Shown here: positions 25,834 to 57,797 of the stretch, one piece after another
Layout of the letters: each line of letters starts with the position of its first letter
Numbering within the stretch: position 1 is the first letter of the stretch
Origin: Azolla caroliniana
Taxonomy: Eukaryota; Plantae; Polypodiophyta
Reading direction: 5' to 3'
Length of the DNA stretch: 64,000 nucleotides
Assembly (NCBI GenBank): GCA_043228905.1
Contig: JBHGNT010000001.1
Span: 8,680,001 to 8,744,000 of the forward strand
Program-made: the position numbers and the translations under genes
The notes under the pieces: generated by a model
Databases searched by the model: none
The model's input: the letters and a program-made list of their open reading frames with translations, nothing else
Told to the model about the DNA's origin: nothing

Positions 25834-26048
25834 CTTTTCATATTCAATATTTCGTAAGAAGCAAACATATAAAAACCGTGGGCACAAAACCATTGTTTTA
25901 GCCCATGGTTTTTGCATGAAGAGACCTATAAAAGCCTATAGTGGGGCTTGTGTAAGGGGACAAGTGATGTAAGTAAAACTTTTAATCAAAGATCTGAGTT
26001 ATCCTAATGGTGATGTATCTTGTCTCGTAAAACTAAAGTCAAGGGTTC

Positions 26049-26083
<35 letters not shown>

Positions 26084-26200
26084 ATCCATCTATCTGTCTG
26101 CAATACTTTCTCGCTTACGTTGTAAAAACTTCAAATCCTTCCGAACCAGGACCCCGGTGGTCCCGCTTCATTTCGTGAACACGTGAGGATTTCCTCGACA
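25834..26200 (+). mobile_element. 3' part of a Trp-Gypsy clade LTR (subfamily X), in Copia A' integrase
   Basis: Reverse complement of ~53505-53965. Ends GACCCCGGTGGTCCCG...CTCGACA, followed by ACGG of the host NGVAERKNR codons. Confidence 0.85.
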
Positions 26201-28802
26201 ACGGTGTGGCCGAAAGAAAGAATCGATCAATTGTGGGGGTGGTACGGGCAATGCTAGAAGAGGAGAGCATGCCCAAGTTCTACTGGGCCGAAGCCATCTG
26301 CACGATTGTCTACATCCAAAACTGGATCGAGGATAAGGTGTCAACACACGAGCTGTATTCCGGGCGGATGCCGAATTTAAGGCACCTTAAGATATTCGGT
26401 AGCATAGCCTATGTGCATGTACCGGATGAGAAGTGGAGGAAGTTGGGCCAAAGTCGGAGAAATGCATATTAGTCGGCTACTCTCATGAGCAGAAGGGGTA
26501 TAAGTACTATAACCCCCGGACAAAGACAATCCGAGTGAGCCGAGATGTCAAATTTGATGATGAGCTGGTGAGCAACGAAGACTCGATTGTGCTCTCCCCG
26601 TGTAAGGAACTAATGAGACGGTTCACACGCAAGGAAAAGGGGAAGAAGAAGATGCCGGAATACGCCACCGACAGAGACGAGTCGGATTGAAGGGAATCCG
26701 ACTCCGGACGGAACGAAGTCCCAGTCAGCTAAGAGGGCCTCGCAATTGCCGAATGCGAAGTTACGCTAATCGATCCACTAGACGAACACCGTCAAAAGGT
26801 ACAGATTAATGAGTACATGGCGCATCACCACGCGTACATGATGAAAGTGACGGAAGTGCGTGAGCCGGAAAGCTACGCAGAGTGGCAAAAGACGCGAATT
26901 GGCGTGCCGCAATGGAAGAAGAAATGCGGGCACTAGATGCCAACGACACATGGGACCTGGTTGACCCTCCCCGACATTGCAAACCGTTCGGTTGCAAGTG
27001 GGTGTACAAAGTCAAGTATAATGTTGACGGTTCGATCAACTGGTACAAGGCCTGGTTAGTGGCAAAGGGATACACGCAGACCCACAGAATCGACTACGAT
27101 GAGACCTTCGCTTCGGTAGCGAAGATGACAACGGTCTGTGTGGTGCTAGCGGTTGCTACGGCAAGGGGGTGGCATCTTCATCAGATGGATGTGAAGAATG
27201 TGTTTCTTCAAGGTGTTCTTGAAGAACAGGTCTACATGGTCCAACCCCCCGAATTTCAGTCAGAGATGAAAAAGTCGGTAGTGTGCCAATTCAAGAAGTC
27301 GCTTTACAGTCTAAAGCAAGCCCTTCGAGCTTGGAATGCGAAAATCACGCACAGGTTGCGTAAGATGGGTTTTGCGACCTCAAAATTCAACTCCTCACTG
27401 TTCATCCAGAAAGGTCTGGACGGCACGGTATGTATCTTGCTATATGTAGATGATCTAGTGATCACCAGACCCGGGCTCAATGAAAATCGGCCGAGTGAAG
27501 TCCCAGCTGTTGAATGAAATGAAGGACCTGGGGGACCTTCATTATTTTCTAGGGATTGAGGTGATCCATACCCCCGACAGTATATTCCTCTCACAACGAC
27601 ATTATGTGCTGAAAAGGTTGTACAAGTTCGGCATGACGGATTGCCAACCGATCTCCACACCCTTGGACCGGAACCTAAAGCTTCGTCCCAACTCCGGAGC
27701 TGCCTACAACAAGACACGTTTCCGACAAATCCGTTATCCGGCATGAGTTAACAATCACCTACTTGACATCAGTTATCCAGTCGGAGTGATTAGCCAATTC
27801 ATGCAAAGGCCGACCGTGGAGCACCTTCGGTGCGCACATCGTATACTACGGTATGTTAGTGGCACTAAGCATAAGGGTCTGTTATACCGACATGGTATAG
27901 CTGAAAAGCTAGTCGGATATACAGATGTCGATTGGGCTGGTGATGCATCGGATCGCCGGTCCACCTTCGGATACATGTTTTCTCTGGGTAGCGCGACTGT
28001 TGCGTGGAGTAGTAAAAAGCAACCAACAGTGGTTCTGTTTAGCATTAAAGTTGAGTATCGGTGCACTACCATTTCCACCTGTGAAGCTATATGGCTTCGG
28101 CGACTGCTGCAAGACCATCGGGTCGAGGTACCGACCTTGATCCTGATCTATTGTGACAACATCATATAGCTCGCTAAGAACCCCGTATTTCATGCTCGGA
28201 CAAAGCACATAGAAGTGCTTTATCACTTTGTGCGTGAGCGAGTCCTAAGTGGTGAAGTTGAACTTCGCTATGTTCACATGGATCGGCAGGTTGCCGACAT
28301 CTTCACCAAGCCGCTCGGATCAGACAAGTTGCAACACTTCTCGGAGATGCTCGGTCTCCACCATCTCGACGTGCCGCACTTGAGGGGGAGAATGGAGATA
28401 GGTAATGGCATCAGACAAGGAGCCGGAGAGAAAGAGAGAACCAAGACACGGGGAGATAAGAAGAAAATGGAAGCCGAGTCGACCAAAGGAGTCGGCACAT
28501 CCGAACAAGTCAGAGAAAGTGATGACGACATCAAAGTCAAGAGAGAGAGAGCTGACTGGAATAAGAAGGCCAAGACCCGGACATGGTCCGATGTTGTGAA
28601 GGGCCTGAAAACGGAAGACGAGTTGGAGACTACCAACTCGGACAAGAGCTGGAACGAATTGGAGAAAACCGATTCAATTCAACAATTTGATTCGGAAGAG
28701 CCGAATCTGTTGAAGGCCAAGCGAACTAGAGGGCAGTGAAGATGACACTAGAGTCATAGCAACGAAGGAGCTAAGATGGGCTTGTTGAGCAGACAAGCCG
28801 AT
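26201..28802 (+). mobile_element. Copia A' 3' half (INT end, RT, RH, tail), pseudogenised
   Basis: AERKNRS, KARLVAKG-like, LYVDD, ADIFTKPL, then KAKTRTWSDVVKGLK tail. Internal deletion near 26560 relative to copy A. Interrupted at 28803. Confidence 0.9.
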
Positions 28803-29243: not shown

Positions 29244-31792
29244 TGGTATCAGAGGGTGAGGGTTGAGACTCCTCTGCAGCCGACAGAAAAGCTTGCGATA
29301 AAACATAGTTAAGTTGTTATCGGAAAGGATAAGACAACAATATGGATAGAGGAATGGGAAGCTCGACAGGAGCAACTACGCATCTTGGTCGTACAAGATG
29401 CACCAGTACCTGCTTGGTCATGGCTATTGGAGTTATGTCGAAGGAGTTAATGATACAACACCCGAATCGACACACATATATTTTTCGGCTTGGGAACAAG
29501 CGGCAAACAAAGTTCTTTATTGCTTCGCGTCCTGTGTGAGCGATCAGCTCTTGAGCTACATTCGGGATGCTAAGACGCCAAAGGACGCGTGGGCGAATCT
29601 CAAGAGGATTTTCGCCGCTAGCACAACGGCCAGGAAGCTGCAGCTCAGGTAGGAGTTCAGCAATGTCCGACAGAAAGATCTGTTTGTGGCTGATTACACG
29701 GCCTGAATCAAGGAGATCTGCAACTCTCTCGCCTCCGTCAACGTGAACGTTGAGGAGGACGAAATGGTGCAGGTTTGCCTTGGTGTGTTAGCGTCAAAGT
29801 TCGGAGCGTTCCGAACGGCGGTCTGCACAAGAGAGATTACGCCCTCGTTCTTCAAGCTTCAGTCAATGTTGCTCGTCGAGAAAAATCACGTGAGTGCGTC
29901 GACGAGTACACACACAGACAACAAGATGTTGTACACGGAGGAAGATAGGCCCGTTGTCGTGGCGGATTGGCGCGCAATGGAGGTGGCCGAAAAGAGTAGA
30001 ACATGCGGCATAATCGAAATGCCAGAAGCAGGGGGAGTCATAGCGGTGCTGGAAGCCGGCAAGAGAAGGCCACGACGGAATGCTGGTACTGTGGCAAGAA
30101 AGGCCACAGTGAGAGAGAGTGCTGGAAGAAGAGAGCCGATTCGGACAAAGCCGAATCGAGCGGAAGAGACGCAGGAAGGTGTCAGAAATCACACTATGTC
30201 GAAGGCTCCGAATGAGGCGGAAATGGATTGGGCCTAGCCTTTGTAATGAAGCACAAGGCCATTTCGATGGCCGTGAACACCTCGAAATCGGGGGAGGTGT
30301 GGTATGTTGATTCCGGAGTGTCAAATCATATGACGAGTCATGAGGAATGGTTCTTGTACTTGGAGAAACCGGAAAAACAAGGAGTGGTCGAAACGGGAGA
30401 CGACACTCCGCATACCATCGAACATGTCAGAGAAGTTCTTCTCAGGCACATCGGGTAGAAAGGGAAACTTATGAACGTGTTGCACGTCCCGACAATAATC
30501 AAGAACCTGGTGTCGGTCGGACAGATCGTCGACCAAGGGTTACAAGTTCGATTCACGCACCTCGGGTGCTACATCGAAGAGGAAGCCAAAGTTATTGTGC
30601 AAGCGCGCCATGAAGGGAGGATGTTTATCCTTGACACCAATCAAGCCGGAACCGTGTTGTTCGAGAAAGGACAAAAGGTCGAGTCAGATATCAACATGTG
30701 GCACAAGCGGTTTGGCCACGTTAACTTCCCACAACTTCGTGAAATGTAGACGAAGAACATTGTTTTCGGCTTGCCGAAATTTCGGGGCCATAATGGCCAA
30801 GTTTGCGAAACCTGTCAACTCGGGAAGCAGCACCACCTTCCATTCCCCAATGAGCATAATCATAGTCAAAATTCGTTGGATTTGATCCATTCGGATGTGT
30901 GGGAACCGACACAGAACGTGAGTCTCGGTGGAAGCCGTTACTTCGTAACCTTCATCAATGACTTCACTCGGCACACCTGGGGGTGCTTGATCATGAAAAA
31001 GAGCGAAGTCTTCGTGTGGTTCCTGAAGGTGAAGAACCTTGCGGAAAGGGAAACATGGCGTAAGATCAAGTGCCTACGGTCTGATGGCGGGAAGGAGTAC
31101 TTCTCCAACTAGTTCATGAGTTATGTACAGAAGGAGGGAATTCGATGCAAATTCTCGTGTAGATATACGCCGGAGTAGAACGACATAGACGAGCGGAAGA
31201 ATTGGACAATCGACGAAGCCGCTAGGGCAATGCTTGAAGAGAAGCATATGCCGATGTTTTACTAGGCTGAAGCCGTAAGGATGGCTGTTTAATTGCAGAA
31301 TTGGACCTCTGCTAATGGAGGAGTGTCGCCACATGAGTTGTATTACGGCAAGAAGCCAAACTTGGCACACTTGAGGATTTTCGGCAACATTACGTATGTG
31401 CATGTGCCGAATGAAATGAGGAGGAAGTTGGATGCCAAAGCCGAGAAGTGTATATTGGTCGGCTATTCAGACGAGCAGAAGGGGTAGAAGTGTTATAACC
31501 CCAGACAAAGGAAGTTCGCATAAGTCGAGATGTCGTATTTGACAAGTTCACTTCGTGGTACTTGCCTTCACCTCCAATACCTCATGACTCCATTCCGAGT
31601 TCTGAAGAAGAGATCAGCGAGGTTGAGATGCCTCTGCGTGATGAGGATATTGGAGCTCTGACAGAGAGTCCGATCTCATTTCGGCTAAGTGGGCAGAATG
31701 AGGGGTTGGGCCGAGATGGCCGACCAAATGAAGAGCCAACGAGTAGTGGAGACTCGGCCGTGTTGTCCCCGCATAAAGAATCGAGGAGACGA

Positions 31793-32472
31793 TGTTGTGG
31801 AGAAAACCGTCCCTAGGCGGAATCGGAGAATGATGTGCGCGAACCGGCCCTTACACACGGGTACACGTTTTGTTGTAATATACATATTTAGGTACAAGTC
31901 GGCTGATGTGAATATCCTAGGTCGCACGAATTTGATAGGTAGGAAATCGAGGCATATCTCTGTCCGAAAGGACAAAGAATAAAGAGGATGTAACAAGTTG
32001 TAACGGCCTCCCTCCTTGGGCTATAAAAGAGAGGGAGAGGAATCGTAAAAGGGCTCGCTTTTGTCGAGGACGAAGCACTGTCAGATTGGGACCGAGCTCT
32101 TCTCCTCTGTCTGTCTCTGTACTTGCTCTGTGCAGGTTTTCGGGAGGCTGACTCTGCTCCACGGAATGCCCGAGTGCTTCCGACAGAGTCTCCATCTCGC
32201 TCTTCTGTGTGCGTGTGTGTAGGCGTAGGAGATCTGTCGCTCACTAGCTTGCCGGTTGTAACCCCTTTTTCATCAGAATATATATATATACTTATACGCA
32301 TTCGTCTCATTTCCGTTGTTTCATTCGGTCGCGGTTTCTGTGTTTCTGTGTGTGTGCGTGTGTGGAAGCACAACCGTTGTCTTTCTTGCTCCCACTCCTG
32401 ATCGGTTGTTCCTCGGTCCAAGGCCCCCGTGGTCCCGCCTCGTTCTACACGCACGTGCGTAACAACGTGACA
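31793..32472 (+). mobile_element. Solo LTR of the Trp-Gypsy clade
   Basis: TGTTGTGGAGAAAACCGTCC...CCCCGTGGTCCCGCC...GTGACA, ends matching G1/G2 LTRs; 4-bp TSD ACGA/ACGG. Confidence 0.9.
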
Positions 32473-32868
32473 ACGGTTTATGCGTAAAGAAAAGGGGAAG
32501 AAGAAAATGTCGGAGTACAATTTCGACAGTGCCGAGTCAGATCAGAGCGAATCTGACTTCAGGCCAATTGAGAAGGAACCTCCAAGGAAGGGGTCAAAAT
32601 CGACCGAAAAGGTTGTGAAATCGGGTAATCACGAGTTACGTCGATCTACCCGCCTAAAGAACCCCGTAAAGAGGTATGGGTATAATGAGTACATGGCGCA
32701 TCATTATGCGTACATGACATGCATGGCAGAAGTGCGTGAGTCGGAGAGCTATGCAGAAGCGGCGGAAGACGCAAATTGGTGTGGTACGATGGAGGAAGAG
32801 ATGCGCACATTATCAGACAACGAGACTTGGGACCTAGTTGACGCACCTAAAGGTGTTAAACCGATCGA

Positions 32869-33154
32869 ATGCAGATGGGTGTTTAAGGTGAAATACAACA
32901 CAGACGGCTCGGTCAACCGATATAAGGCCCGTTTGGTTGCGAAAGGCTACGCACAGAAGCACGACGTAGATTACGACGAGACCTTCGCACCAGTTGCGAA
33001 GATGACTACCGTGCGAGTTCTGCTAGTCGTAGCTGCGGCGAATGGGTGGCATCTACATTAGATGGATCAGATGCAGATGGGTGTTTAAGGTGAAATACAA
33101 CACAGACGGCTCGATCAACCGATATAAGGCCCGTTTGGTTGCGAAAGGCTATGT
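32869..33154 (+). repeat. ~200-bp tandem duplication in Copia C RT; second copy split by G1 (continues 52981-53097)
   Basis: ATGCAGATGGGTGTTTAAGG... at 32869 and 33071; both copies end CATTAGATGGAT. Confidence 0.9.
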
Positions 33155-35108
33155 TGTCGCGTTACTACGCGCGTGCGTGGAGAAACGAGGCGGGACCACC
33201 GGGGTCTTGAACCGAAGAGCAGGTGATAGGAGGGGAAAGACAAAGAGAGAGACGACCGGTTACGTATGAGCAAAGAAACACAGGGACACGGCCCGTCAAC
33301 GCAGAAAGCGCAAATGGACATTGAGACAGAGAGACACGAATGTTTGTATATTAACAAATGACACAAAACAACGGAGCACGCGAGCGGTTACAACCGAACA
33401 GGCCGGCGAACAGATGCCGATGCCTGTTCGTCTACGCACGAAAGGGGATAGGATGGAGGTGCTGCCGGAAGCACACAGGCGTTCCTCGAAGCAGCGCGAG
33501 CCTCCCGAAATCCTGTAGAGAAGAGCGATGGAGAATGAATAGAGGAGAAGCGTTCGGTTACGGTCCGACAACACTTCGTCCTCCTCAATGCGCGATCCCT
33601 TCTCCCCGCGTCTCCCTCTCCTTTATAGCTTCAAGAAGGGAGTCGTTTCCCTCATTAACTTTCTACCTACCGAATCTAACTACCTAGGATATACCTTTGT
33701 ACCTAATCCTTTATTATATACATTAGAGGGCGCGCACGCGTGAAGAGCCGGTTCGCGCACGCTATACACCGATTGCGCTAAGGGACGGTTTTCTTCACGA
33801 CATCCGCCCCCACCTAACCGCGCATCCACCGGTATGCGCCAAAATTGGGTTCTGGTTGGAGAAAACCGGTCCGGGTTCCGGTTCCTCGTTCATCGGCTCG
33901 TCCTCTGTTTCAGACTGTTCATCGTCGCTGTCCAGGCCTCTTACATCCGGTTTGCCGTCGTGGCGCTTCTTGAACGCCTTGATCCGCTTCCCTGCTACCG
34001 GTACCGCCATCCTTGTACCGTCGAGTTCTGCTAGGTGATACGTCCCATTGTCGTTGGCGCTCGTTACCACGTAAGGCCCGAACCACCGCTTTGCAAACTT
34101 CCGTGTTGCCCGGTGCTGGTTGTCGAGGCTGTTGTCGTAGACTAGCACCCAATCGCCTTCCTCGATTTTCTTTGGTCGGAGCCGGTGTGTTCGGTCGAAC
34201 CGGGCTTTGTTCCTCATCCTCGCCGTCCGAAGCCTCTCCGCCGTTTGTTCCACGTCCCCTGGCCTCCGCTCGAGCTGCCGTATACGCGCCGCTAGCAGTT
34301 CTTCCCGGCTCATCTCGTCTCTCCAGTCCACCGTCGCCCAAGAGGAGATCGTCTGTTCCATCGGTATGATCGGCTTCTGTCCGAACATGAGCTCTGACGG
34401 CATGAACCCGGTTACCGAACTGTGCGTTGTCCGGTCCACCCACAAGGCATAAGGTAATAGTCGTGGCCAGTTCCCGACCTGGCCTCCGCATGCCCGGACT
34501 AGCGCTTTGACGATCGGTCCGTGTCCGCGCTCCACCTTCCCGTTCGCCTCCGGATTGTACGTTATGGTGAGCGAGAGCTTGACCCCTAACCGATTGAACA
34601 GCTCCTCGGCCTCTTCGGCGTCCAATTCCCCGCGGTCAGCCACGATCTTCCCGACGCACCCGTACCGGCATATCACGTCCTCGATCAGGAACCGACACAC
34701 GGCCGCGGTCGTTTTGTTCTGTAGGGCTCGGCCTTCCACCTAGTTCGTCAGGTCCTCCCGGGCCAGCACCAGATATCACATCTGCCCTACGCCCATCGAC
34801 ATCGTCACCAACTCTACCATCCATTTGAAGTGGATGGCCGGAGGGTATGTAGGGTGAAGCTCGTCCCGATGTCAAACTATGGAGTGTATCTGACAGCTCT
34901 CACAAGTTGTCACGAACCGATGCACGTCCCGGTACAGTCCCGGCCACCAGTACTTCCCCTTTAGTTTCTCGAACGTGGCCCATGTCCCACGGTGTCCAGC
35001 CCAGGGGCTGTCGTGGTAGGCCTTCAACAACTCCTCCTGTTCCTCCTTCATCGCCACTACTCGGAGCAGGATGCCGTTCCTCTTCTTCGGGTGCTTCCAC
35101 AAGTATCC

Positions 35109-35194
35109 TGTTGGAGACGAGGTCGTCTATGCGGAAGATCAAGAAGCATTCGATTGGTGTTTGAATACCTGCGTATGCCAGTTTCTAGGTCGTT

Positions 35195-35228
<34 letters not shown>

Positions 35229-38200: not shown

Positions 38201-40569
38201 TGGCAATGCTCGCAGAATTGATGGTCGGAGAAGGATAGTTTAGGGATGTATCCGGCTCTAGATAGATGCGTAATGCCGGCCTTGCTGAGGTGTCCTAATC
38301 TTCTGTGCCATAGTGATGACACAGGAATATCCACCAAAAACAGGTTACCCTCTCTGAGCGTAACATGTAACGGATATAGTGAGTGTATCTTGGGTCCTCT
38401 AGCAAGCAGGAGGTTCCCCCTGTGGAGTGTCCACCCTCCCGAAGAAAAACCGGCACGAATGCCGTCTTCATCTAGTTGTCCGACTGAGATCAATGGCCTT
38501 GAGAGCTCGGGTACATGTCGGACATTGTGGAGTACAAGTGTAGAGCCACCTGCAAGGTTGAGCTCTACTGTGCCGATTCCGATGATGTCACAGTGTTGTG
38601 AGTTGCCGACTCGAACTGAGTCGGAGTGACGGATCGTATATTGCCGAAATTGGGATCGATGAGGAGTCACGTGAAATGACGCGCCCGAATCTAAGAGCCA
38701 TGTGCTCGACTCTTCAGTCGTGAGTAGGACTTCTGATCTGACTGGATTTTCGATTGATAGTATATTCGGGTCGTCTGGTAGCACATCAGCTGAGAAGCTG
38801 ACGTAATTGATCTCCTCATGCCGGCCACTCTTCTTGTTGTTCTTGTTCTTGAGTGCGCGGCAGTCGGCTTTGATGTGTCCGGGTTTCTTGCAATAGTTGC
38901 AGATTCGGTTATCCCGTGACTGGCTCCGTCTTCGCGGATTGTTCGGCGGCCGTGAGGAATCTCTTCCTCGTATGTTCGATCGGTCTGTCGAACCTTGTAC
39001 TACATAAGCGTCGTCTGTTGAGTCTTTGGCGAAAGACTTTCTCCGAGCTGCTTCGGTCAGGATTGCGCTCGTGACTTCGGAGTATTTAACAGCCGTGGTT
39101 CACGCGTTGCACACGGTTGTGACAAAAGTTTCCCATGATGAGGGAAGGCTACTCATGAGTATCATTGCTCTGAGTTCATCCTCGATTGCCGTCCCCTGTG
39201 ACGAGATTTGGGAGCTTATGCTTTCGTACTCATTGAGGTGTGCTTGAACCGAGTCGGATTCTTTCATCCGCAAGTTGTAGAGGCGCCGGATCAGAAACAT
39301 CTTTGTTGCGGCGACCTTCTTTTCGTAAGTGTCCGACAGTGTTTTCCACAGTTCGAATGCTGTCGTACACGATTGCACCGTAAAGTATACCGATTCCGAT
39401 AGGTGCATCCGAATCGTGGGGCGGACGATTCTGTCCAGCTTCTGCCACTCAATTGGTTTGTATCCTTCTGGAGGTTCTTCATTTTCGATGGGATCGATTT
39501 GCCCCTTGACTATGAGATAGTCCTGCATTTGTTCCTTCCAGAAGTTGAAGTTCGATCCATCGAACTTGCGTAGACTCATTTCTGACGAGCCGGATGTTGA
39601 TGCCATCAAATTTGGTTTCGGTTGACGGAGCTCGGTTCGGAGTTGACTACGAACCTTGTTGGAGTGCAGCCGGTTGGCTCACCCGATATTGTTCTAGTCG
39701 GATTTGAACCCGAGTCGGTTCGGCTTCGGAACTTGCTCGAATTGACTCCGGTAGCTTGAGGGACAGAACCGACTGGTCTTCCCGAATGTTGCCGAGTCGG
39801 AGTGAGCCCGGTTCGTTTCGGATATATATGCCGAATACCGATTATTGAAACCGATTATCTGGACCGATTCTGCTTCGGTTGACTGCAGCAACGAGAGAGA
39901 CGGATCCAACTGATCCTCCCGAATGTCGATCAGCCAGATGAAGCACGAATTTGGGGTTGTTGTCTTAAGACCGATCTGCACCGAGTGGTTACAATGAGCG
40001 GCGTTTGATTACCTCTTCGGATGCCGTTTAACCGGGTGGAGCACGATCGTGTCAATGTTGCACAAGGGGATTTCACCTCGAGCGGTTACGATCACAAGGG
40101 ACAGAGTACAACCTGCTGGCTTACTCCAAGCGAAGATGATCTAACGCGATGAGATGCAAGCCTCGTTTCTCTTCTTCTTCTCTCTTCTTCGAATGACGCA
40201 GGAAACCGAATGCTGTGCAGGCTGAGACGACGGCCGACAGCAGATTGAAGGACCGACTACTGTGCAGGCTCTGATACCAGATGTTGGAGACGAGGTCGTC
40301 TATGCGGAAGATCAAGAAGCATTCGATTGGTGTTTGAATACCTGCGTATGCCAGTTTCTAGGTCGTTGCACAGAGAGAGAGAGAGAGAGAGAGAGAGGCA
40401 CAAAAGACTTTCTATTCAATAGAAACAATAATACAACACCCAACCTTACAAGAAGGTTACAAGGTCACTATATATAGTGACCGACTTAGGGCAACTACCA
40501 TTTATGCTAATTACACAAATGGCCCGAAGGGATAGTGTGAGTACGTCCATTATACACTTGTATTCGACA
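35109..40569 (-). mobile_element. Ty1/Copia D (Tnt1/Tork-like), full-length and young
   Basis: LTRs 40282-40569 and 35109-35398 appear identical except one AG unit. Perfect TSD TATCC, PBS TGGTATCAGAGC at 40268-40279, PPT at 35399-35406. Confidence 0.95.
35593..39606 (-). pseudogene. Copia D gag-pol polyprotein with one in-frame TGA (39100-39102)
   Basis: ORFs 39100-39609 and 35593-38784 share a frame. The interval encodes CNYCKKPGHIKADC; then LDSGASFH, WHRRLGH, HSDVCGP, IYVDDML, ADGMTK. Confidence 0.9.
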
Positions 40570-43943: not shown

Positions 43944-43966
43944 AAGAGGCGGCAGAAGAGCAGAAG

Positions 43967-46093: not shown

Positions 46094-49000
46094 AGAGGGC
46101 TGCCAAGGCGTGGGGCCGCGACAGTCCGGACACCCCGGGAAAACCCCACACCTGTACGATAAAACCGAAGAAACCTTGTACCATAGGTAGGGAATTTTTG
46201 TTCTCCGACAACGGAGCGTGTGCGATGGTCGGCATCGCCGGCCGAGAGAAAACAAAGACGGAGGCGAGACTTCGAGCGTGCGGAGTTCTCGGCCCGGACG
46301 AGGAAATCAACGGAGCCGTGGAGGCGGTCTCATTCGACGACACCTTGGGAATGCTGGGAAAGGTAGTCGAAGAAGGCCTTAACGACGACCGGACGATACC
46401 GGTGTGTTCCGAGGAGATGTACGAAGTCATCGCGGACTTCGGTCGAGGGCTCGAGTCAGTTCGGACGGCCCACGTAAACACCAAGTACAAGACTGTGGAC
46501 CGGAAGGTAAGGCCAGTAGCGGCACCCTTACCGGAGGACAGCGCGTCGAGAATCAAAGGGGTTGCATCAGACCCTAGTCTACGAGATCCGGCCTGCATAG
46601 GGCACACCTTCACTGACGAGACGCTCCGAGAGCTCAAAATCGGTGGGGGCGGGTTCCTACTGCCGGCGGAGGAAGACCGGTTTCGGAGGATGCTCGGAAG
46701 GCACGGGAAAGCCTTCGCATTCTCGCCGGAGGAAATCGGGTGCGTTGACCCGACGATCGTGGAGCCGATGGTGATATTCACGGTACCGCATGTACCATGG
46801 AATCTCAAGCCAATCCCGGTTCCGAGAGCTCACATCCTGAAGTTGATGGAGCTGCTGAGGCAGAAAGTTGATATGGGAATTCTCGAGCCGTCGAGCGCCC
46901 CATATTCGAATCGATGGTTTACCGTACCGAAGAAAAACAGTTCGCTGCGCTTCATCCAGGACCTGCAGCCGGTCAATCGAGTGACCATTCGGAACGCAGG
47001 AATCGGACCGACCATAGACGAGTTCGCGGAGGCCTTCGCCGGAAGGTCAATTTACTCGGTCGGGGATCTATACTCAGGGTACGACCAGTTCCAGCTGGCC
47101 GTGGAGAGCAGAGACCTTACGACGATGCGAACTCCCCTCGGCCTAGTTCGGATGTGTACACTGCCGCAAGGAGGGACCAACTCGGTGGCCCACATGGTGA
47201 ATGCGATGAACAAGGTTCTGAGGGACTGTGTCCCGGACATTACCATGCCGTTTCTGGACGACATCCCGATCAAGGGATGCCCGGTGGAAGAAAAGGACGA
47301 GACGATCGGGCCGGACGGATGCCGGCGATTCGTGGCGACGCACGTCGACGATTGCGAGAAGGTGCTGCAAAGGCTAGAGGATGCGAGACTCACCTTCTCC
47401 GGGGAGAAGTCGGCCTTCGGGCAGTCAGAAATCATGGTGGTCGGACACCTGTGCGGACCATATGGCCGGAAACCGTCTCCGGCGAAGGTAGAAGCCATCT
47501 CCGCGATGAAGCCCGACTGCAGCTCGGTCACGGAAGTACGGAGATTCCTGGGGGCATGCGCGTTCTACCACATATGGATCCCGCATTACGCACACGTCGC
47601 GGAGCCACTGTACGGGTTGCTGAAAAAGGGGCGAAGGTTCGAATGGCTAGACAAGCACGCGGAATCGGTCCGGAAGCTGAAAGAGGCCCTTGCAGCGGCA
47701 CCGGCACTCCGGAAGGCGGTTTACGGGAAGGGTACCCCGGTATTCATAACGGTGGATACCAGTCCGACCGGGATCGGATGGGTCGTGAACCAGGAAGACG
47801 AGGACGGCAATCGGTTTCCGATCCGATTCGGCGCGAAAGTCCTCAGTGAACGGCAGCGAGGATACGCCCAGGTTAAACGCGAACTCTGGGGTATTGTTTC
47901 GGCGGTTAAGGCCGACAAAGACTACCTGATAGGGACGGAAGTGATCATCGAGACGGATTGCCTGCCGATTCTCGGTATGGTTTCCGGATGCGCGACTCCG
48001 GACCTGGCGATGCTCAGGTGGATAGCGTACATCAAGTCCCTGGACCCGGAAATACGACACATTTCCGGGAAAGACAACGCCATGGCCGACATGCTTTCGA
48101 GGGCGAGGTTCGACGACGAGGGCGGCATGGTTTCGGAAGACGAAGAAGTCGGCGTGGATTTCTTCGAGGCGGCATACATAACGACCGACGGGATGAGCAC
48201 TCCGGCGCTTAACGAGTTCGACGCGAGCAAGTACGACGGGGAATGGCTGCAGATCGGCGGGTTTTTGAAGACGATGACGCCCGATGCGTCATGGACGAAG
48301 GACGAGGCCAACCGGATCCGGAAGAAAGCATATCGATTCTTTCTCCGAGATGGGCATCTATGGAAGCACCCGAAGAAGAGGGACGGCGTCCCGCTCCGAG
48401 TGGTGGCGATGAAGGAAGAACAGGAGGAACTGCTGACGGCCTACCACGACAGCCCTTGGGCTGGACACCGTGGAACATGGGCTACGTTTGAGAAACTAAA
48501 GGGGAAGTATTGGTGGCCGGGGCAGTACCGGGACGTGCATCGGTTCGTGACAACTTGCAGGAGCTGTCAGATGCACTCCATAGTCCGACATCGGGACGAG
48601 CTTCACCCCACGTACCCTCCGACCATCCACTTCAAATGGATGGTAGATCTGGTGACGATGCCAATGGGGGTAGGACAGATGCGGTACCTGGTCCTAGCGC
48701 GGGAGGATCTGACGAACCAAGTGGAAGGCCGGGCCCTTCCAAACAAAACGACCGCGGCCGTATGCCGGTTCCTAATCGAGGACGTGATATGCCGGTACGG
48801 GTGCGTCGGGAAGATCGTGGCTGACCGAGGGGAGTTGGACGCCGAAGAAGCCGCGGAGCTGTTCGACCGGCTGGGAGTCCAGCTCTCGCTCACCACTGCG
48901 TACAATCCGGAGGCGAATGGAAAGGTGGAGCGCGGACACGGACCGATCGTCAAGGCGTTGGTTCGGGCATGCGGAGGCCGAGCCGGTGACTGGCCGCGGC

Positions 49001-49581
49001 TGCTACCTTATGCTTTGTGGGCAGACCGGACCACGCACAGTTCGGTAACCGGGTACATGCCGACGGAGCTCATGTTCGGCCAGACGCCGATCATGCCGAT
49101 TGAACGGACGATCTCCTCGTGGGCAACGGTCGACTGGAGGGACGAGATGAGCCGGGAGGAGTTGTTGGTCGCACGTATACGACAGCTCGAGCGGAGGCCG
49201 GAGGACGTGGCACTGGCTACGGAGAAGCTCCGGGTGGCGAGGACAAAGAACAAAGCCCGGTTCGACCGAACGCACCGGCTACGACCGAAGAAAATCGAAG
49301 AAGGTGACTGGGTGCTCGTCTACGACAGCAGCCTCGACAACCAGCACCGAGCCACACGGAAGTTCGCACGAAGGTGGTTCGGGCCTTACGTGGTACGGAG
49401 CGCCAATGACAACGGGACATATCACCTGGCGGAACTTGACGGCACGAGAATGGCGATACCGGTTGCAGGGAAGCGGATCAAAGCGTTCAAGAAGCGACAC
49501 GACGACGAGCCAGACCCGGCTCTCCTGGTCGGCAGTGACGAACGATCCGAAAATGAAGAAGAACCGACGGGCGAGGAATGA
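46078..49581 (+). CDS. pol: G2 Pol (RT-RNase H-integrase), -1 frame relative to Gag-PR
   Basis: Frame opens after TAA at 46075-77. RT DLYSGYDQ, LPQGGTNSV, PFLDD; RH VDTS..ETDC..ADMLSR; INT H..H..CRSC, VDL, ADRGE, NGKVERG, GPY. No chromodomain. Confidence 0.93.
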   Translation, partial: PRGFLERAAKAWGRDSPDTPGKPHTCTIKPKKPCTIGREFLFSDNGACAMVGIAGREKTKTEARLRACGVLGPDEEINGAVEAVSFDDTLGMLGKVVEEGLNDDRTIPVCSEEMYEVIADFGRGLESVRTAHVNTKYKTVDRKVRPVAAPLPEDSASRIKGVASDPSLRDPACIGHTFTDETLRELKIGGGGFLLPAEEDRFRRMLGRHGKAFAFSPEEIGCVDPTIVEPMVIFTVPHVPWNLKPIPVPRAHILKLMELLRQKVDMGILEPSSAPYSNRWFTVPKKNSSLRFIQDLQPVNRVTIRNAGIGPTIDEFAEAFAGRSIYSVGDLYSGYDQFQLAVESRDLTTMRTPLGLVRMCTLPQGGTNSVAHMVNAMNKVLRDCVPDITMPFLDDIPIKGCPVEEKDETIGPDGCRRFVATHVDDCEKVLQRLEDARLTFSGEKSAFGQSEIMVVGHLCGPYGRKPSPAKVEAISAMKPDCSSVTEVRRFLGACAFYHIWIPHYAHVAEPLYGLLKKGRRFEWLDKHAESVRKLKEALAAAPALRKAVYGKGTPVFITVDTSPTGIGWVVNQEDEDGNRFPIRFGAKVLSERQRGYAQVKRELWGIVSAVKADKDYLIGTEVIIETDCLPILGMVSGCATPDLAMLRWIAYIKSLDPEIRHISGKDNAMADMLSRARFDDEGGMVSEDEEVGVDFFEAAYITTDGMSTPALNEFDASKYDGEWLQIGGFLKTMTPDASWTKDEANRIRKKAYRFFLRDGHLWKHPKKRDGVPLRVVAMKEEQEELLTAYHDSPWAGHRGTWATFEKLKGKYWWPGQYRDVHRFVTTCRSCQMHSIVRHRDELHPTYPPTIHFKWMVDLVTMPMGVGQMRYLVLAREDLTNQVEGRALPNKTTAAVCRFLIEDVICRYGCVGKIVADRGELDAEEAAELFDRLGVQLSLTTAYNPEANGKVERGHGPIVKALVRACGGRAGDWPRLLPYALWADRTTHSSVTGYMPTELMFGQTPIMPIERTISSWATVDWRDEMSREELLVARIRQLERRPEDVALATEKLRVARTKNKARFDRTHRLRPKKIEEGDWVLVYDSSLDNQHRATRKFARRWFGPYVVRSANDNGTYHLAELDGTRMAIPVAGKRIKAFKKRHDDEPDPALLVGSDERSENEEEPTGEE

Positions 49582-52500
49582 AGACGGGCCGGTTTTCTCC
49601 GTCCCAACTCTCTTGGCGCATACCGGAGGATGCGCGGTTAGGTGGGGGCGGATGTCGTGAAGAAAACCGTCCATAGGCGGAATCGGCGCACCAAGGCGTG
49701 GGAACCGGTTCTTCACGCGCGCACGCTCTGAGTTGTACATAGAAACGAATTGAGAGGATAATCGGCAGGAACGGGCCCTAACTCAAGTGGAGACAAAGAC
49801 CGCGCGAACAGTCTTTTCGGTCGCGCGCGCGAACTGTACGAGTCGGCGGCGTAACTACGCGGATCTGTGAAAAACGGAGCGGATCCCTGTCCAAAAGGGA
49901 CAGGGAATAAAGCTGACACGACGGCCTGTTCGTCGGCCTATATAAGGAGCGGGAAAGAGCTGTTGCAGGGATCGGGCGCGGAGAGGACGAAGTGCTGTCG
50001 GACCGTTTCTGGACGCTTCGCTCTCTCCGTTTCCTTCCTTCTTGAGCTCCAAAGCTTTCTGTGCAGGGTTCCGGGGAGGCTCGCGCTGTTTCGAGGAACG
50101 CCCGAGTGCTTCCGGCAGCACCTCCGACCTGCTACCCCCCCCATTTCCCCGTTTGTGCGTCAAAGCGAACAGGCATCGGCATCTGTTCGCCGGCCTGTTC
50201 GATTGCAACCAACCTGTGCCCCATCGGGGGTTGTAGTCGTGTTAGCCATTTTGTTAATACACATATTTAGTCATTCGCATCCGTCTGTGTCGGTGTCTGT
50301 TCGCGTTCTCCGTGCTGAAGGGCCGTGTCCCTGTGTATCCCCGGTCCTGCGTAGCCGGTTCTCTCTCTTTCTCCTCCCTCGCTTGCTCTTTGGTTCGAGA
50401 CCCCCGCGGTCCCGCCTCTATTCCGCACGCACTTGCGTAATATCTCGACAGCGCGTCGCCGCCCGTATCTTCCACCCGTGCTTGGTGTTGATCGGCCATT
50501 TCCCCTTCTTGTAGAAGTCCATGGACATCAGGTTTATTTCCGAACCGTGGTCCACCAGCGCTACCACCGGTTCCTGAACATCTCCGATCTTCACCGGGGT
50601 TTCCGTGGTCGCTCGGGCCCAGTGTGGCCTCGAGTAGTGGCTCTCCGCCCACTCGTCTTCCAGCGCCATGTCCTCCATGTTCGTCGTCCGCACCTCCACC
50701 GGCCTTTCCGGTTCTGTCTCCGTCGACAGCCTCTTCCTCTTCACCAAGTCTACGATGGAGTCGTGGAACTCCTTCTTGGCGATTCCGAGCACCTCCCGCA
50801 ACGACAATTCCACCTTGCTGTCGAGGATTCGTTCTTCCAGGACCTTTTGTAGGTCCGTGGTCCTTTTGATCTCCGTGCCCAACTGGTATCCGCCCTTCTT
50901 GTGGTTATCCCGGGCACTGGTCTCACCGACCTCATTCTGTTTTGGCCTGAATCGGGTTTCGTATCTCTATGAGGGTCCGGCCCCTCTGGTTTTACCTACC
51001 CGTTTGTCTTCAACCGGAGCCTCGTAGTTCTGGCAAGTTGCTTCGACGAAACCCGTCTTTTCTTCGACCAGGTCACTCCACCCGGTTACCTCCTGGACCC
51101 GCTTCTCCGCGCGGTCCGCCTCGTCTTTCTTTAGTCGGGCACCGGCGAGGCCTTCCAGCACCGTCGGCTAGAACCCAACTTTGCTCTCCTTCCGGGCCTC
51201 GCTGCCACTGACCCGAATACCGGCCGACGCCGAGTAGTGGACGGTCTCCGCGTGCCGGGCCGCTGCCTCTTCCATCAGCCTTTTCATTCCTCCTCGCCCG
51301 TCGTTTCGGTTCAGGGCCCTCCGGGTATCGCTGGCGTGCACCTGACCTTCCCACAGGTACACTACCCGGCTTCTCAAAGCCTCTGCAAAGTCCACGCAGT
51401 CTTTCCGGATGTGGCCGACCTCGTCGCACCACATGCACCTATTTCCTGCCGGAGGCCGTCGGTCACGAGCCTGTTCGCCACCTTCCCTCCGAGCCTGGGC
51501 GATCTGGAGATCCTTTACCGCCCGTGTCAACTCCTCCAAAGCTGTCCCCCCGGACGAGCCTCTGACCACACCGGTCGAAGCCGAACCAGTTTCGAGCCAC
51601 TCCCGGGTCTCTTCTCGTCGCACCTGCGGTATCGGTTCGAGCTTCCTTGCTGCGACAGGACCCGCCCCGGTATCAGCCCACTCCCACCGTTTGTCAAAAC
51701 GGCCGCAGACTCTTTTTACCGCAGCCCAGTCAGCCTTCAGCCTGTCTTCGGTTTCCAGTAAGGAGCCCACTTGCCCCCGATCCCGTGCGTCAACCGATTT
51801 GACAAACAGTACGACACGACTTGTGTCCAGAACGGTCCGATCGAGCGCCGAAAGGCGCGCAAAGCGATCCTCAAACTCCCGGAGGAGTGCCGACACATTT
51901 CTTCCTTTGTCGGGGGACTCCACCCACTCCATGAAGCCCCGCTGCGAAAGTTGAAGCGCGTCATCCAGCCCGTATTTCTCCAGGATCCGTCCTTCGAACT
52001 CCTCCTAGGTCTGGATCTCCGCCCGAACCTCGAGCACCTCCGCATCGATGCCCGACATCACCACTCGAGGGAATCCGGCAAGACTCCTCTCTTCCGGAAT
52101 ATCCCTCATCAACATCTCCGCCCGGTAGGACGCGAAATAACTCGTGGCATCCTTTCCACTGAACCGGCCGATCATATCGACGATCGCCTCAATAGCCCCT
52201 GTCAAGGGCGCCGGTGCCCTCACGCGCGCTCACTATCCGGTCCACGGCCGAAGCCATGGCCTCTGCAAGATCCGACCCCCTCATCTTCTGCTCCTCTGCT
52301 GCCTTGTTCACGTCGGGTTCACCAAATATGTCGCATTAGTACGCGCGTGCGTGGAGAAACGAGGCGGGACCACCGGGGTCTTGAACCGAAGAGCAGGTGA
52401 TAGGAGGGGAAAGAGAGAGAGAGAGACGACCGGTTACGTATGAGCAAAGAAACACAGGGACACGGCCCGTCAACGCAGAAAACGCGAATGGACACAGAGA

Positions 52501-53794
52501 CAGAGAGACACGAATGTTTGTATATTAACAAATGACACAAAACAACAGAGCACGTGAGCGGTTACAACCGAACAGGCCGGCGAACAGATGCCGATGCCTG
52601 TTCGTCTATGCACGAAAGGGGATAGGATGGAGGTGTTGTCGGAAGCACACAGGCGTTCCTCGAAGCAGCGCGAGCCTCCCGAAATCCTGTAGAGAAGAGC
52701 GATGGAGAATGAACAGAGGAGAAGCATTCGGTTACGGTCCGACAACACTTCGTCCTCCTCAATGCATGATCCCTTCTCTCCGCGTCTCCCTCTCCTTTAT
52801 AGCTGCAAGAAGGGAGCCGTTTCCCTCATTAACTTTCTACCTACCGAATCTAACTACCTAGGATATACCTTTGTACCTAATCCTTTATTATATACATTAG
52901 AGGGCGCGCACGCGTGAAGAGCCGGTTCGCGCGCGCTATACACCGATTGCGCTAAGGGACGGTTTTCTTCACGACAACGCGCAGAAGCATGATGTAGATT
53001 ACGACGAGACCTTTGCACCAGTTGCGAAGATGACTACCGTGTGAGTTCTGCTAGCTGTAGCTGCGGTGAATGGGTGGCATCTACATTAGATGGATGTAAA
53101 GAATGTGTTCCTGCAAGGTGATCTTGAGGAACAAGTGTACATGGTACAACCCCTCGGATTTCTATCTGAATAGAACACTTCAGCAGTTTGCCAATTGAAG
53201 AAGGCATTATACGGCCTTAAGCAAGCCCCGCGAAGATTACACAACGGTTGCGTAGAATGGGGTTTACGACGGCCAAATCGAACTCTTCGTTATTCGTTCG
53301 GCAAGGTCGACATGGACCGGTTTGTCTTTTACTTTATGTTAATGATTTAGTCATCTCCAATGCCAACCTGGAAGAAATCGGTTGCATAAAGTCTCAGCTT
53401 GCAACATCATTCGAAATGAAGGATCTTGGCGACCTTCATTACTTCCTCGGGATCCAAGTAATCCATTCCCCCGAAGGCATATTGATCAGTTAGCGTTATT
53501 AAGTTGTCGAGGAAATCCTCGCGTGTTCGTGAAATGAAGTGGGACCACCGGGGTCCTGGACCGGAAGGATTTGAAGTTTTTAGCAGTGTAAGCGAGAAAG
53601 TATTGAAGATAGATAGATGGATGAAGAGAGAGAGAGAGATTGAGATAGAGATTGAACCCTTGACTTTAGTTTTACAAAACAAGATACATCACCATTAGGA
53701 TAACTCAGATCTTTGGTTAAAAGTTTCTTTTTACTTACATCACTTGCCCCCTTACACAAGCCCAACTATAGGCTTTTATAGGTCTCTCCATGCG

Positions 53795-53911
53795 AAAACC
53801 ATGGGCTAAACCCATAGGCTAAATCCATGGGCTAAACCCACGGGCTAAAACCATGGGCTAAAACCATGGGCTAAAACCATGAGCTCAAACCATGGGCTAA
53901 AACCATGGTTT
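53795..53911. repeat. 13-bp tandem repeat (AAAACCATGGGCT) x~9 in LTR X U3
   Basis: Direct reading of the units. Confidence 0.92.
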
Positions 53912-53985
53912 TGTACCCACGGTTTCTATATGTTTGCTTCCTACAAAATACTGAATATGAAAAGAAAATATACAAATTAAAGCAC

Positions 53986-54060
53986 TCAGTAGTGGCTTTA
54001 GTGGTAAGTTAATTTGTCTCCTATCTTGGAGGTGCAAGGTTCAAGCCTTGCTTCCACCCA
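53986..54060 (+). other. tRNA-derived Pol III A/B-box module inside LTR X
   Basis: A box TGGCTTTAGTGG (53993) and B box GGTTCAAGCC (54038), 45 nt apart. Hairpins GCAAGG/CCTTGC and CTCC/GGAG; no good acceptor stem. Confidence 0.55.
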
Positions 54061-55602
54061 TGTATGCACTTAAATGTTACCAGGGTTTAGTCTTATTTTT
54101 ATATTTACAATTGAGCGCACATCACATGTGCACATGCTTAACTTTACATCTAGCTTTTCTTTTACGATTCTCATTTCAGTCCTATTTACAACATGCTACC
54201 ATATGCGTGTGGCCTTCACCCCTTTCACATGTGCACATTGCACCTTCTCGATTTTGTTCGTTGCACACAATTTTCATACCGTTGCCGAAAATCTTCACGA
54301 CAACATGCTGAATATGCTCTTCAAGTTCGGGATGACAGATTGTAAGCCCATCTCGACCCCTCTGGATAGAAATGTAAAGCTTCGCCAAGATTTGGGAAAG
54401 GCATGCGACCCGACGTGGTTTCGACAGATTGTCGGAAGCCTCATCTACTTGACGATCACTCGGCCGAACCTCAACAATCTGGTCAGAATGATCAGTCAAT
54501 TTATGTCACAACCCACGACTGAACACCTTTAGTGCGCGCAAAGGATATTACGATATGTCCGTAGCACAAAAGACATGGCATTGCTGTATCATGCAGACGT
54601 AGCCGAGCAGCTAGTTGGCTACATGGATGCCGATTGGGCCGAAAACGCCCACGATCGTAGATCCATATTTGGATACACATTCTCATTGGGAAGTGCAGCG
54701 ATCGCGTGGAGCAGTAAGAAGCAGCCGACAGTAGCACTGTCGAGCACAGAGGCCGAATATCGAGGGGCAACTGTCGGTACGTGCGAAGTCATTTGGCTAA
54801 AACGGCTATTACGGGATCTACACATACAAGTGTCTGATCCGACGACGATCTATTGCGACAAACTCAGCAGCATCCACCTTGTGAAAAACCATGTATTCCA
54901 CATCGGACCAAGCACATTGAGGTGCATTACTACTTTGTCCGCGAGCATGTCCTTTTTGGTGAAGTCAAACTGGTATATGTTCTGACGGATCGACACATTG
55001 CCGACATCTTCACCAAGCCCCTTGGTCTCGACAAGTTATGAAATTTTTCGGGTGAGCTCGGTCTGTGCCACCTCGACACGCCGAACTTGAGGGGGAGACA
55101 GGAACAGGAGTGTGAAAGGAACGGTAGTGATCGCGATTCCGAATCGGATGAAGAATTCCAATTCGGGCCGGCTGAAGAAGCCGAAGAAGAAAACAAGGGC
55201 CGTAATCGAAAGGAAGAGCCGAAGACAGCTGAACAAAAGGGAAGTACAACCAAGAAGGGCGTAAAGGCCAAGACCAAGACGTGGTCTGACATTGTCAAGG
55301 GCCTGAAAATAGAAGACAAATTGGAGACAGCCAATTCGGGCGAAAGAGGAATTAAATTAGAAATGACCGATTTAATCGAAATGTTCGATTCAGACATTAC
55401 GAATCAACTGAGGGCCAAGTGGAGGAAAGGGCAGCGGAAGAGGCACCAACACCGCGATAGCAAGGGAGTTGAGGAGGGCCGCTTGAGCAGACAAACCGAT
55501 CGGAATGGTCGAAGCGTGCGGAATCAAACGGGTCGAGGAGCGTGAGCGAGGCGTGAAGCCAGGAGAGGCCGGAGCGAAGATCCGGAAAAGCAGATGGAAC
55601 CT

Positions 55603-56672
55603 TGTTGTCCGCCGGAATAGTAACCGACGGACAAGAGTGCAGGAAAACGGAATAGTATAATATTGTAACGCATGTAACGGTTCACACTAGAAGCGTGAAC
55701 GGCTAAAAGACCTTGTGTATATAAAGGGCAGAAAACCTCTGATAGAGGTAGCGTGTAATTTTGAATGTAAGAGGCGTATCGTAATAGAGTTCTATCTTCT
55801 CTGATATTTGTGTATAGCTATGGCTAATCTACTGTGTGTCTGTAACACTTGAGAGCGTGGGAGTAAGTAACGGTGTGTGCGCTAGCCCACTGTCAAAGGA
55901 GCTCGGTTGTAGCCGTGTCCCTTATACGTTGGTAGGGTACGGGGAATATCCCACTAAGTATTATGCACAGACGCTACCATTCGTTGTCACACAGCCACTT
56001 GGAGGTCTAGGTCGAAGGACTGACCGTAGACCGTGTTCCTAGTCGGTAACACTTTTGGCACGCTTGGTGATCTGTGTTTTCTCATAGACGAACAATGACG
56101 AATGAATGTTTAGCCGCAGACGCCCGAGAGAACCAACACGACCAGACTGGCCAATCACAAGGTCCATCACACGCCAGGCAGAGGAATGCGCACGGCAAAA
56201 GCCCCGCCTCAGCGACCTCAGCACTACCTGTCAGGACCACAAAGGTGATTTCCCGCTCTCCAAATACCTCGATGATACGCGGGAAGCACGCTCACCACAC
56301 TAGCACTGTGGTCTTTCCCTGCCCGCCATAGCCCCCAGCATGGCCTTTGCCTATCCCCGCTTTAACGACGAAACCGACGTCGCAACCCACATTCGCATGT
56401 TCCTCAATGTCTGGAATGCAAACCACATGGCGTAGAGCCTTTTTGAGGCAGTAACGCACCAGTCCAAAATGACGGAGTTCAGGTTAACATTGGATGGGCG
56501 AGCGGCGTTTTGGCATTCACAGATGGATCTGCCAGCAATCACGACATTCGACTAGCTGCAGTCCACCTTTTTGCGGTTCTTCCATCGGAGGGTTCCACAA
56601 CGCGAAATCCTCGGACCGTTCTACACAATTAAGCAGCTGCCGACCGAGATGATCGTGGATTTCAGCTTACGT
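55603..56672 (+). mobile_element. Ty3/Gypsy H (non-chromovirus, Tat/Athila-like): 5' LTR 55603-56051, PBS, decayed gag
   Basis: TGTTGTCCG...CGGTAACA. PBS TGGCACGCTTGGTG at 56056 (tRNA-Arg-like). Gag AYPRFNDETDVATHIRMF..LTLDGRAAFW..TIKQLPTE with stops; interrupted by G3. Confidence 0.72.
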
Positions 56673-57797
56673 TGTCGTGAAGAATTTCGGCTAGAGGCGA
56701 AAGCCGGGAAACATTGGCTACATCGGTGGGGTGCAGCGTGTGTACGCACCCATGTACATTTAGTGTGAATATCGAGGGCGCCTTTATGGCGCTGAAGAGT
56801 AGTCAAGTCGGGTCAAACGATCCCATGAAAGTCGGGATTTGTCCCACATTGTAACGCATCCCTCTCCTTGTTCTATAAAAGGAAGGGATCGCCCTTTGTG
56901 GAGGGGTTGCCCATTTTGCATTAGAGGGTATACCGTTAGGTTTAGAGTTAGGTTCTTCTTCTTCTCCTTCTGCGTGTTTGCTTAGGGTTTGCTTTGGTTC
57001 GGCCTCCTGTGCAAGACCCCGCTCGGCGCGACGAGCTGAGAGCTCCCCGACGGCGGCTTGACAGCAGACGACTACTGTAACCTACCTCAGTCCGGCTCGA
57101 AGCCGGGAATGTATTCTTCTTTATATATATACATACATATACGTTTGCGTCCGTCTGTGTGTATTCGCGTCTTCGTTGGTGTCGAGTGCTTCCCCTTTTT
57201 CCTGCGTTTTCTGTACATAAGGGCGTGAGTCGGGTCGGGCTGTGTGTGTGTGTGTGTGTGCGAGTCAGTGTTAATCTCTCTCTCTCTCTCTCTCCCTTCG
57301 GTTGCTTCCGGTGTGCTTCTGGGATGCCCCGGAGACGGCGAGGCACGACTTCCTACGCTCCATCTCTCCCTAGTCCAAGACCCCCGTGGTCCCGCCTTTC
57401 TCCACGCACACGCGTAACAACGCGACATATTTGGTGAACCTGACGTGAAAGGTGGCAAGGGAGGATGGAGTTGGAAGACTACGACCTTGCGGAGATGGTG
57501 GCCGAAGTGGTGTTGGAGTCGGCACGAGTGGTGATGAGGCGAGAAGCAGCGCAACAAGCGGTTGAGTGAGTGGTCGAAAGAGTCGGCCGTTTCAACGGGG
57601 ACAAAGTCCCACCTTACTTGGAAGCCTACAACGCGGAAATGGAGGAGCGTGGCGTAGACGAGGCGTTGAGGCTGGAGTTCTTCTGTCGGGTCGTGGCTGT
57701 CCGGATGCATGCGGAAATAAAGGAGCTTCGTGAGGCTCATAGTTTGTGGGAGGCCTTTGAAGAGGCGCTCCTGAAGGCATACGGAGGATGGCGGAAG
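56673..57797 (+). mobile_element. Ty3/Gypsy G3 (Trp clade): 5' LTR 56673-57427, PBS 57432-57448, gag start
   Basis: TGTCGTGAAG...CGCGACA; PBS TGGTGAACCTGACGTGA. Gag VGRFNGDKVPPYLEAYNAEM is homologous to G2 IGRFDGRDATKYLASYGAEM. Left flank ACGT. Confidence 0.9.

Follow-up and report, generated by a model that had tools for sequence, protein, structure and literature searches.

Do some retrotransposons take CpG as their integration target, and is it the integrase itself that makes this choice? The question is raised by a stretch of 64,000 nucleotides from the fern Azolla caroliniana (GenBank assembly GCA_043228905.1, contig JBHGNT010000001.1, positions 8,680,001 to 8,744,000 of the forward strand; hereafter the window, in whose own numbering coordinates are given). 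It holds six insertions of one Ty3/gypsy clade in or beside copies of a Copia element, all six within other elements. A first-pass annotation had proposed that all six targets are 4-bp sites of the form R-CG-N, that the integrase itself selects CpG and that this choice explains the nesting. We find that the 4-bp pattern with a central CG is real, strong and kept across hosts. The insertions very probably represent a non-chromovirus lineage matching Phygy, whose integrase would act with a 4-bp stagger and an intrinsic preference for V-C-G-B (no T at the first and no A at the last position) that is conserved across ferns, liverworts and, going by the literature, a moss.

The simplest alternative is that nothing was chosen at all and that the pattern reflects chance, post hoc reading or misplaced ends of the long terminal repeats (LTRs). 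There are only six sites in the window, two of them reconstructed, and the pattern was noticed after looking. However, the LTR ends are fixed by their neighbors. LTRs of the clade run from TGTCG to CGACA; the start of the 3' LTR is set by the abutting polypurine tract (PPT; GGTGGGGGCGGA followed directly by TGTCG) and the end of the 5' LTR by the primer binding site (PBS), which starts 4 nt after it (CGACA, TCTT, then TGGTGAACCCGACGTG). In addition, the empty paralogous sites carry the 4 bp once. These sites are available because the window contains three diverged paralogs of the host Copia element: copy A (20556-25194, forward strand), which supplied empty-site references, copy B (26201-28740), recognized by self-comparison as a diverged copy of the same element, and copy C (29518 to about 55100), which hosts three of the insertions.

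G1 is intact, young and 7326 bp long; it lies on the forward strand (43125-50450), inside the gag gene of a second element, G2. The LTRs of G1 (43125-43922 and 49653-50450) are 99.4-99.7% identical, its PBS is found at 43927-43942 and its PPT at 49641-49652. Its target site duplication (TSD) is perfect, with GCGC at 43121-43124 and again at 50451-50454. G1's own gag contains a single GCGC (45805-45808) homologous to the target in G2 gag, and with one copy the frame ..AATRATEEL.. is restored. G2 itself is a full-length element on the reverse strand with two nested insertions (33155-52976; 3' LTR 33155-33802, PPT 33803-33814, PBS 52309-52324, 5' LTR 52329-52976) and an LTR identity of 96.8%. Its TSD copies read ATGT (33151-33154) and ACGC (52977-52980). 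Three empty sites are available for comparison: ACGC at 32949-32952 on the forward strand, in a tandem duplicate of the host, as annotated in the first pass; ACGC at 23321-23324 in copy A; and ACAC at 27072-27075 in copy B. Removal of 4 bp from the G2 site brings the reverse transcriptase (RT) frame of the host Copia element (..LVAKGYAQKHDVDYDE..) back into register. The tandem duplication concerns about 210 bp of the host RT region directly beside G2 (32868-33075 versus 33068-33154 plus 52977 to about 53100), and one of its copies retains the empty ACGC target of G2.

Two solo LTRs are inserted in copy C. The first, on the forward strand (31793-32472, TGTTG..GTGACA), is flanked by ACGA (31789-31792) and ACGG (32473-32476); its empty paralogs read ATGG (22845-22848) and ACGG (26618-26621), and copy C has exactly 4 extra bp. 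The second, on the reverse strand (53505-54302), is flanked by AAGT (53501-53504) and ACAT (54303-54306), and both paralogs hold a single 4-mer, ATGT (23860-23863 and 27604-27607). The 4-bp duplication is thus proven for this solo LTR as well. Its original target was restored as ACGT in the first pass; with both paralogs reading ATGT, ACGT would be no more than the most parsimonious ancestor. The two remaining insertions offer one flank each. Of one Phygy-type LTR on the forward strand, only the 3' end is left (25821-26200); this fragment, 90% identical to the second solo LTR, ends in ..CGACA and is followed by ACGG (26201-26204), where copy A has ATGG (22242-22245). The 5' LTR of the element G6 on the forward strand (56673-57427) is preceded by ACGT (56669-56672) and followed by a PBS at 57432-57447 and a gag fragment (57483-57785) that is interrupted by a Copia-like insertion at 57798. 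Similarity among the LTRs of the six insertions is no higher than 70-90%, which places them in several families of the clade.

Taken together, the empty sites establish a 4-bp TSD in four of the four two-sided insertions, and at five of the six sites the central CG can be read off without reconstruction, the sixth, at 53505-54302, being deduced as described. As CG has a frequency of 0.057-0.075 in this region, five or more of six would arise by chance with a probability of about 1e-5. The flanks and coordinates of all insertions and the use of host frames to fix the TSD length at 4 bp in the first-pass annotation hold, for the G1 and G2 sites by restored frames and through paralogs with one copy. 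Its count of six was one higher than direct observation allows, and the purine at position 1 is not general, as shown below. Other elements of the same pile behave differently: a Copia-like element on the forward strand with 290-bp LTRs, nested in G2 pol (35109-40569), has a 5-bp TSD without CG (TATCC on both sides). A second 5-bp TSD of the first-pass annotation, GACTC, could be traced only to the flanks (GACTC/GACTC) of a 158-bp TG..CA segment at 19941-20098.

The prediction was tested on relatives from other genomes with a Pol identity of 57-95%. These comprised chromosomal loci of the liverwort Riccia sorocarpa, long contigs from ERZ25073694, an ENA assembly, and 80 metagenome contigs, and LTR ends were located via LTR pairs or by transferring the PPT- and PBS-anchored termini between sequences. 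Riccia sorocarpa provides the best named Pol matches at about 60% identity, values as high as 95% are found in contigs from ENA and JGI, and the integrase also matches Ceratopteris. All seven perfect two-sided TSDs of elements or solo LTRs in these relatives are 4 bp long and of the form NCGN (ACGA, ACGC, CCGG, ACGT, ACGC, CCGC and ACGG). Outside the window, CG occupies TSD positions 2-3 in 23 of 27 distinct flank groups, whereas CG makes up 1.4-4.3% of dinucleotides in the relatives' loci; 23 of 27 corresponds to P<1e-22 even at a background of 0.075. In these relatives, neither mostly 5-bp TSDs nor a lack of central-CG excess, which genome-wide would contradict the original proposal, was encountered. 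The four other flank groups read GCAT, CCAG, CTGC and CCTT. They derive from old elements or possibly chimeric contigs, and three of them contain TG or CA, into which CpG decays. Of 28 CG sites, a single one has T at TSD position 1 and a single one A at position 4, and C is common at position 1; the motif is therefore V-CG-B and not R-CG-N.

Some details of this sample bear on how the flanks are read. Most metagenome contigs are collapsed LTR-internal-LTR assemblies, which give one-sided flanks and two non-matching pairs (L020, 582/8440, CCGC/ACGT; L081, 1669/2305, ACGT/CCGC). These and a third non-matching pair (L008, 3007/14098, ACGG/GCAT) are likely recombinants between copies or assembly chimeras. 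L027 was left out as its apparent terminus lies inside an internal tandem repeat, and no LTR pair was obtained for L006. Five ERZ25073694 contigs (L001, L005, L008, L009 and L010) contain a related family with 4-bp NCGN TSDs and TGTC..CGACA ends that has a different PBS (TGGTGCTTCCACTGAGAG) and LTRs of 2.4 kb. The contig L011 (ERZ1034411 NODE-1263) and other ERZ10343xx-ERZ10344xx contigs have high coverage, and identity between their Pol and that of G1 reaches 95%. The host species of G1, or a sister species, seems to have contributed DNA to these ENA metagenomes.

A prediction made beforehand and borne out in independent loci of other genomes at P<1e-22 leaves little room for coincidence, and the literature holds 186 elements with the same signature. 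In a survey of 13,566 plant LTR retrotransposons, Neumann et al. (2019) described the non-chromovirus lineage Phygy (n=186) with a TSD of '4 bp (100%) (NCGN)', a length of 8628 bp (range 7656-9968) and a PBS complementary to tRNA-Trp in 81% of elements, a combination of traits that is unique to Phygy among the 30 lineages of the survey (PMC6317226). Jedlicka et al. (2019) likewise found Phygy TSDs to be mostly 4 bp long, with the 4-bp TSDs being GC-rich at the center. Phygy was originally termed Physcomitrella patens-specific and was later annotated in the liverwort Apopellia and in ferns. We consider chance or artefact practically out of the question as an explanation. The same record means that CG targeting is not the novelty for which it had first been taken: together with 4-bp TSDs and a PBS of the tRNA-Trp type, it makes up the published Phygy signature, the NCGN 4-bp hallmark of the lineage has been in print since 2019, and the window provides a new host for a known lineage signature.

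The proteins of G1 agree with this placement. Two open reading frames (ORFs) on the forward strand fill the 5.7-kb internal region, with no extra ORF and no extra RNase H. The gag-protease ORF (43940-46093, 717 amino acids) contains DUF4100 and a weak aspartyl-protease match at its end; the pol ORF (46198-49581, 1127 amino acids) encodes RT, RNase H, an integrase H2C2 zinc domain, the rve core and a GPY/F or SH3-like C-terminus. The order of its Pfam domains (RVT_1, RT_RNaseH and RT_RNaseH_2, Integrase_H2C2, rve) is the Ty3/gypsy order PROT-RT-RH-INT. A chromodomain had been noted as missing, and indeed no Chromo match appears in Pol even at E<=1; Pol stops about 30 residues past the GPY/F or SH3_Tf2-1-like module. 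The PBS has the common form TGGTGAACC(C/T)GACGTG, with TGGTGAACCCGACGTG in G1 and G2 and TGGTGAACCTGACGTG in G6. The complement of the PBS has CCA at its end and corresponds to abundant small RNAs of plants that are of the 3' tRNA fragment type. No tRNA-Trp gene for comparison was present in the window or in 16 of the loci, and no Rfam family matched in the window. The PBS sites at 43927-43942, 52309-52324 and 57432-57447 are exact complements of plant small RNAs ending in ..CACGUCGGGUUCACCA that were annotated as 'miR894'; in Cryptomeria, such small RNAs map to the PBS of gypsy elements (PMC5846777).

How could an element find CG with such precision? In the mechanism that we propose, the integrase would join both LTR ends to the target at a 4-bp stagger whose central two base pairs are strongly preferred as CpG (V-C-G-B). 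This preference would be intrinsic to the integrase-DNA complex, with the intasome itself, and not a host tether, reading the CG. A CG placed to the exact base pair at the center of the stagger makes selection by the integrase itself the most likely reading, in line with what the first-pass annotation had suggested. A model for such reading is provided by retroviruses with 4-bp TSDs, in which, as Serrao et al. reported, T and A are disfavored at the edges of the TSD, with V-Y-R-B as the consensus of prototype foamy virus (PFV); the flexible central YR step loses its stacking as the target is bent by the intasome, and the preference is largely independent of chromatin (PMC4422553). V-C-G-B could be an extreme form of V-Y-R-B that shares its geometry, with a bent target and an unstacked central pyrimidine-purine step. 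Additional contacts would then narrow Y-R to C-G, such that of the three Y-R steps almost only CG is accepted.

PFV integrase is also the best sequence match of G1 integrase among solved structures in the PDB (E=1e-19). The motif ADRGEL follows the second catalytic Asp (at about 48820-48840 in G1 pol), and the residue three positions past this Asp is Glu or Asp in all 102 motif-carrying relatives (ADRG[E/D]L). It aligns with PFV Ala188 and HIV-1 Ser119, a position that contacts target DNA. In PFV, the Ala188 position contacts the base three positions upstream of the joining point (PMC4422553). The acidic residue was considered as the reader of the CG and rejected, as its PFV counterpart touches position -3 and not the center; it might be a lead for flank preferences rather than for the CG.

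Several observations weigh against our interpretation, and the place of the acidic residue, which by analogy with PFV would lie away from the central CG, is one of them. The sites CCAG, CCTT, CTGC and GCAT may mean that the CG preference is not absolute. The placement of the window insertions in Phygy is a probable one based on structural criteria, and G1 is, at 7.3 kb, slightly shorter than the published 7.7-10 kb. The PBS is presumably of the tRNA-Trp type, an assignment based on the 3' end of plant tRNA-Trp. No P. patens protein was among the matches listed in either of two protein searches (120 in each).

Alternatively, the precision could come from the host. Tethering is the usual route of target choice for Ty1, Ty3, Ty5, MLV and HIV, and given these precedents a CpG-binding protein of the host, for instance one of the MBD or CXXC type, could hold an intasome that has no sequence preference of its own. 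A tether would, however, bias integration over tens of base pairs and would not put CG exactly at positions 2-3 in 85-100% of events. Moreover, the edge rule against T at position 1 and A at position 4 matches the intrinsic, largely chromatin-independent preference of retroviral integrases (PMC4422553). We regard tethering as a very improbable origin of the pattern.

Methylation deserves a closer look, because an integrase that picks specifically methylated CpG would be steered into silenced transposons, and this would explain the nesting. Six of the six copies in the window do sit in other elements, and Phygy is reportedly enriched at liverwort centromeres. The C>T and G>A substitutions in decayed TSD copies (ATGT in place of ACGC, and ACAT) are those that cytosine methylation typically leaves, and several ERZ25073694 insertions lie in CpG-depleted DNA (observed/expected 0.36-0.47) that presumably has long been methylated. 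On the other hand, domain searches revealed no MBD, SRA or CXXC domain in gag or pol, TSD decay reports methylation only after the insertion, and some Riccia insertions adjoin called genes. The observed/expected ratio of CpG in the flanks, tried as a proxy for target methylation, was rejected as uninformative: it is indistinguishable from the locus background, or slightly above it as target availability alone predicts. Nesting is not particular to the clade either, as Copia-like elements with 5-bp TSDs without CG are nested in the same pile (35109-40569 in G2 and 57798 in G6). With a CG every 14-17 bp or so, the motif alone gives no regional steering into transposons, and the claim that the choice of CG accounts for the nesting is not supported. 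Methylated and unmethylated CG are the same to sequence data, and on balance a specific choice of methylated CpG appears unlikely. A related idea is that the intasome directly reads the CpG step in a methylation-sensitive manner, with 5-methyl-CG being either favored or avoided, and that this property is older than the split between ferns, liverworts and mosses and was retained. If true, this would tie insertion to the epigenetic status of the target site; we hold this to be similarly doubtful. Intrinsic reading of the CG by the integrase accounts best for the sites described here.

The remainder of the window gives the setting of the six insertions. By self-comparison, the pile of nested LTR retrotransposons spans about 20.5 kb to 64 kb of the window. 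Two Copia-like copies in it, at 35109-40569 in G2 pol and at 57798-61211 in G6 gag, are 99.8% identical over 3.4 kb and have 290-bp LTRs of 99.3% identity, which indicates very recent activity. The only clear host gene of the window is an intronless ARO-like armadillo-repeat gene on the forward strand (405-2402; DUF7792 and Arm domains), whose best named homologs are those of Adiantum and Ceratopteris (53-57% identity, compared to 40% in Riccia), in line with a fern-like source. Two further ORFs on the reverse strand are probably host genes adjoining the transposon pile: one of 927 amino acids without a Pfam match (6612-9395), and one of 674 amino acids with a Med26/TFIIS N-terminal domain (9528-11552). 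The loci of Riccia and ERZ25073694 have observed-to-expected CpG ratios of 0.33-0.7. In the window, old transposons included, the ratio is about 1.0, and little CpG decay is evident in the source genome.

The published record of the Phygy NCGN signature consists of only one sentence and one table cell. Its replication outside Physcomitrella, in the fern window, in Riccia and in environmental assemblies, makes CG specificity a deeply conserved trait of the lineage. Our analysis refines the motif to V-CG-B and connects it with the V-Y-R-B rule that applies to retroviral integrases whose stagger is 4 bp. A near-absolute dinucleotide requirement in a natural integrase offers a good system for studying how intasomes read target DNA, and a Phygy-type integrase could show whether cytosine methylation affects integration. 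There is also a practical consequence: Phygy-type elements will be overlooked or wrongly trimmed by LTR finders that accept only 5-bp TSDs.

Among known systems, Phygy is the one that the elements of the window resemble in most respects: both have a 4-bp NCGN TSD, a PBS of the tRNA-Trp type (here presumably), neither a chromodomain nor an extra RNase H or ORF, an internal region filled by coding sequence, and hosts among non-seed land plants. They differ in that Phygy was described from P. patens, whereas the present elements come from a fern and have close relatives in Riccia and Ceratopteris, and in that the related family in ERZ25073694 uses another PBS. Chromoviruses (Tekay, CRM, Reina and Galadriel) possess a chromodomain, usually a tRNA-Met PBS and a 5-bp TSD, whereas the clade studied here lacks the chromodomain and has another PBS and a 4-bp TSD. 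Selgy, a short non-chromovirus element, likewise resides in a non-seed plant (Selaginella), and 96% of its copies have a 4-bp TSD, but it has a tRNA-Ala PBS, is about 5 kb long and has not been reported with the NCGN motif. Drosophila gypsy also belongs to Ty3/gypsy and has a strong, short, alternating target, YRYRYR, that is thought to reflect bendable DNA (PMC9427105). Its target is AT-rich (TAYATA-like), however, and as an insect errantivirus with an env gene it belongs to another lineage. The integrases of PFV and gammaretroviruses share the 4-bp TSD, the central pyrimidine-purine step and the avoidance of T at position 1 and of A at position 4. Yet the retroviral preference is weak and statistical, while in the clade of the window nearly all sites are C-G, and the position of PFV Ala188 and HIV Ser119 is taken by Glu or Asp throughout the clade.

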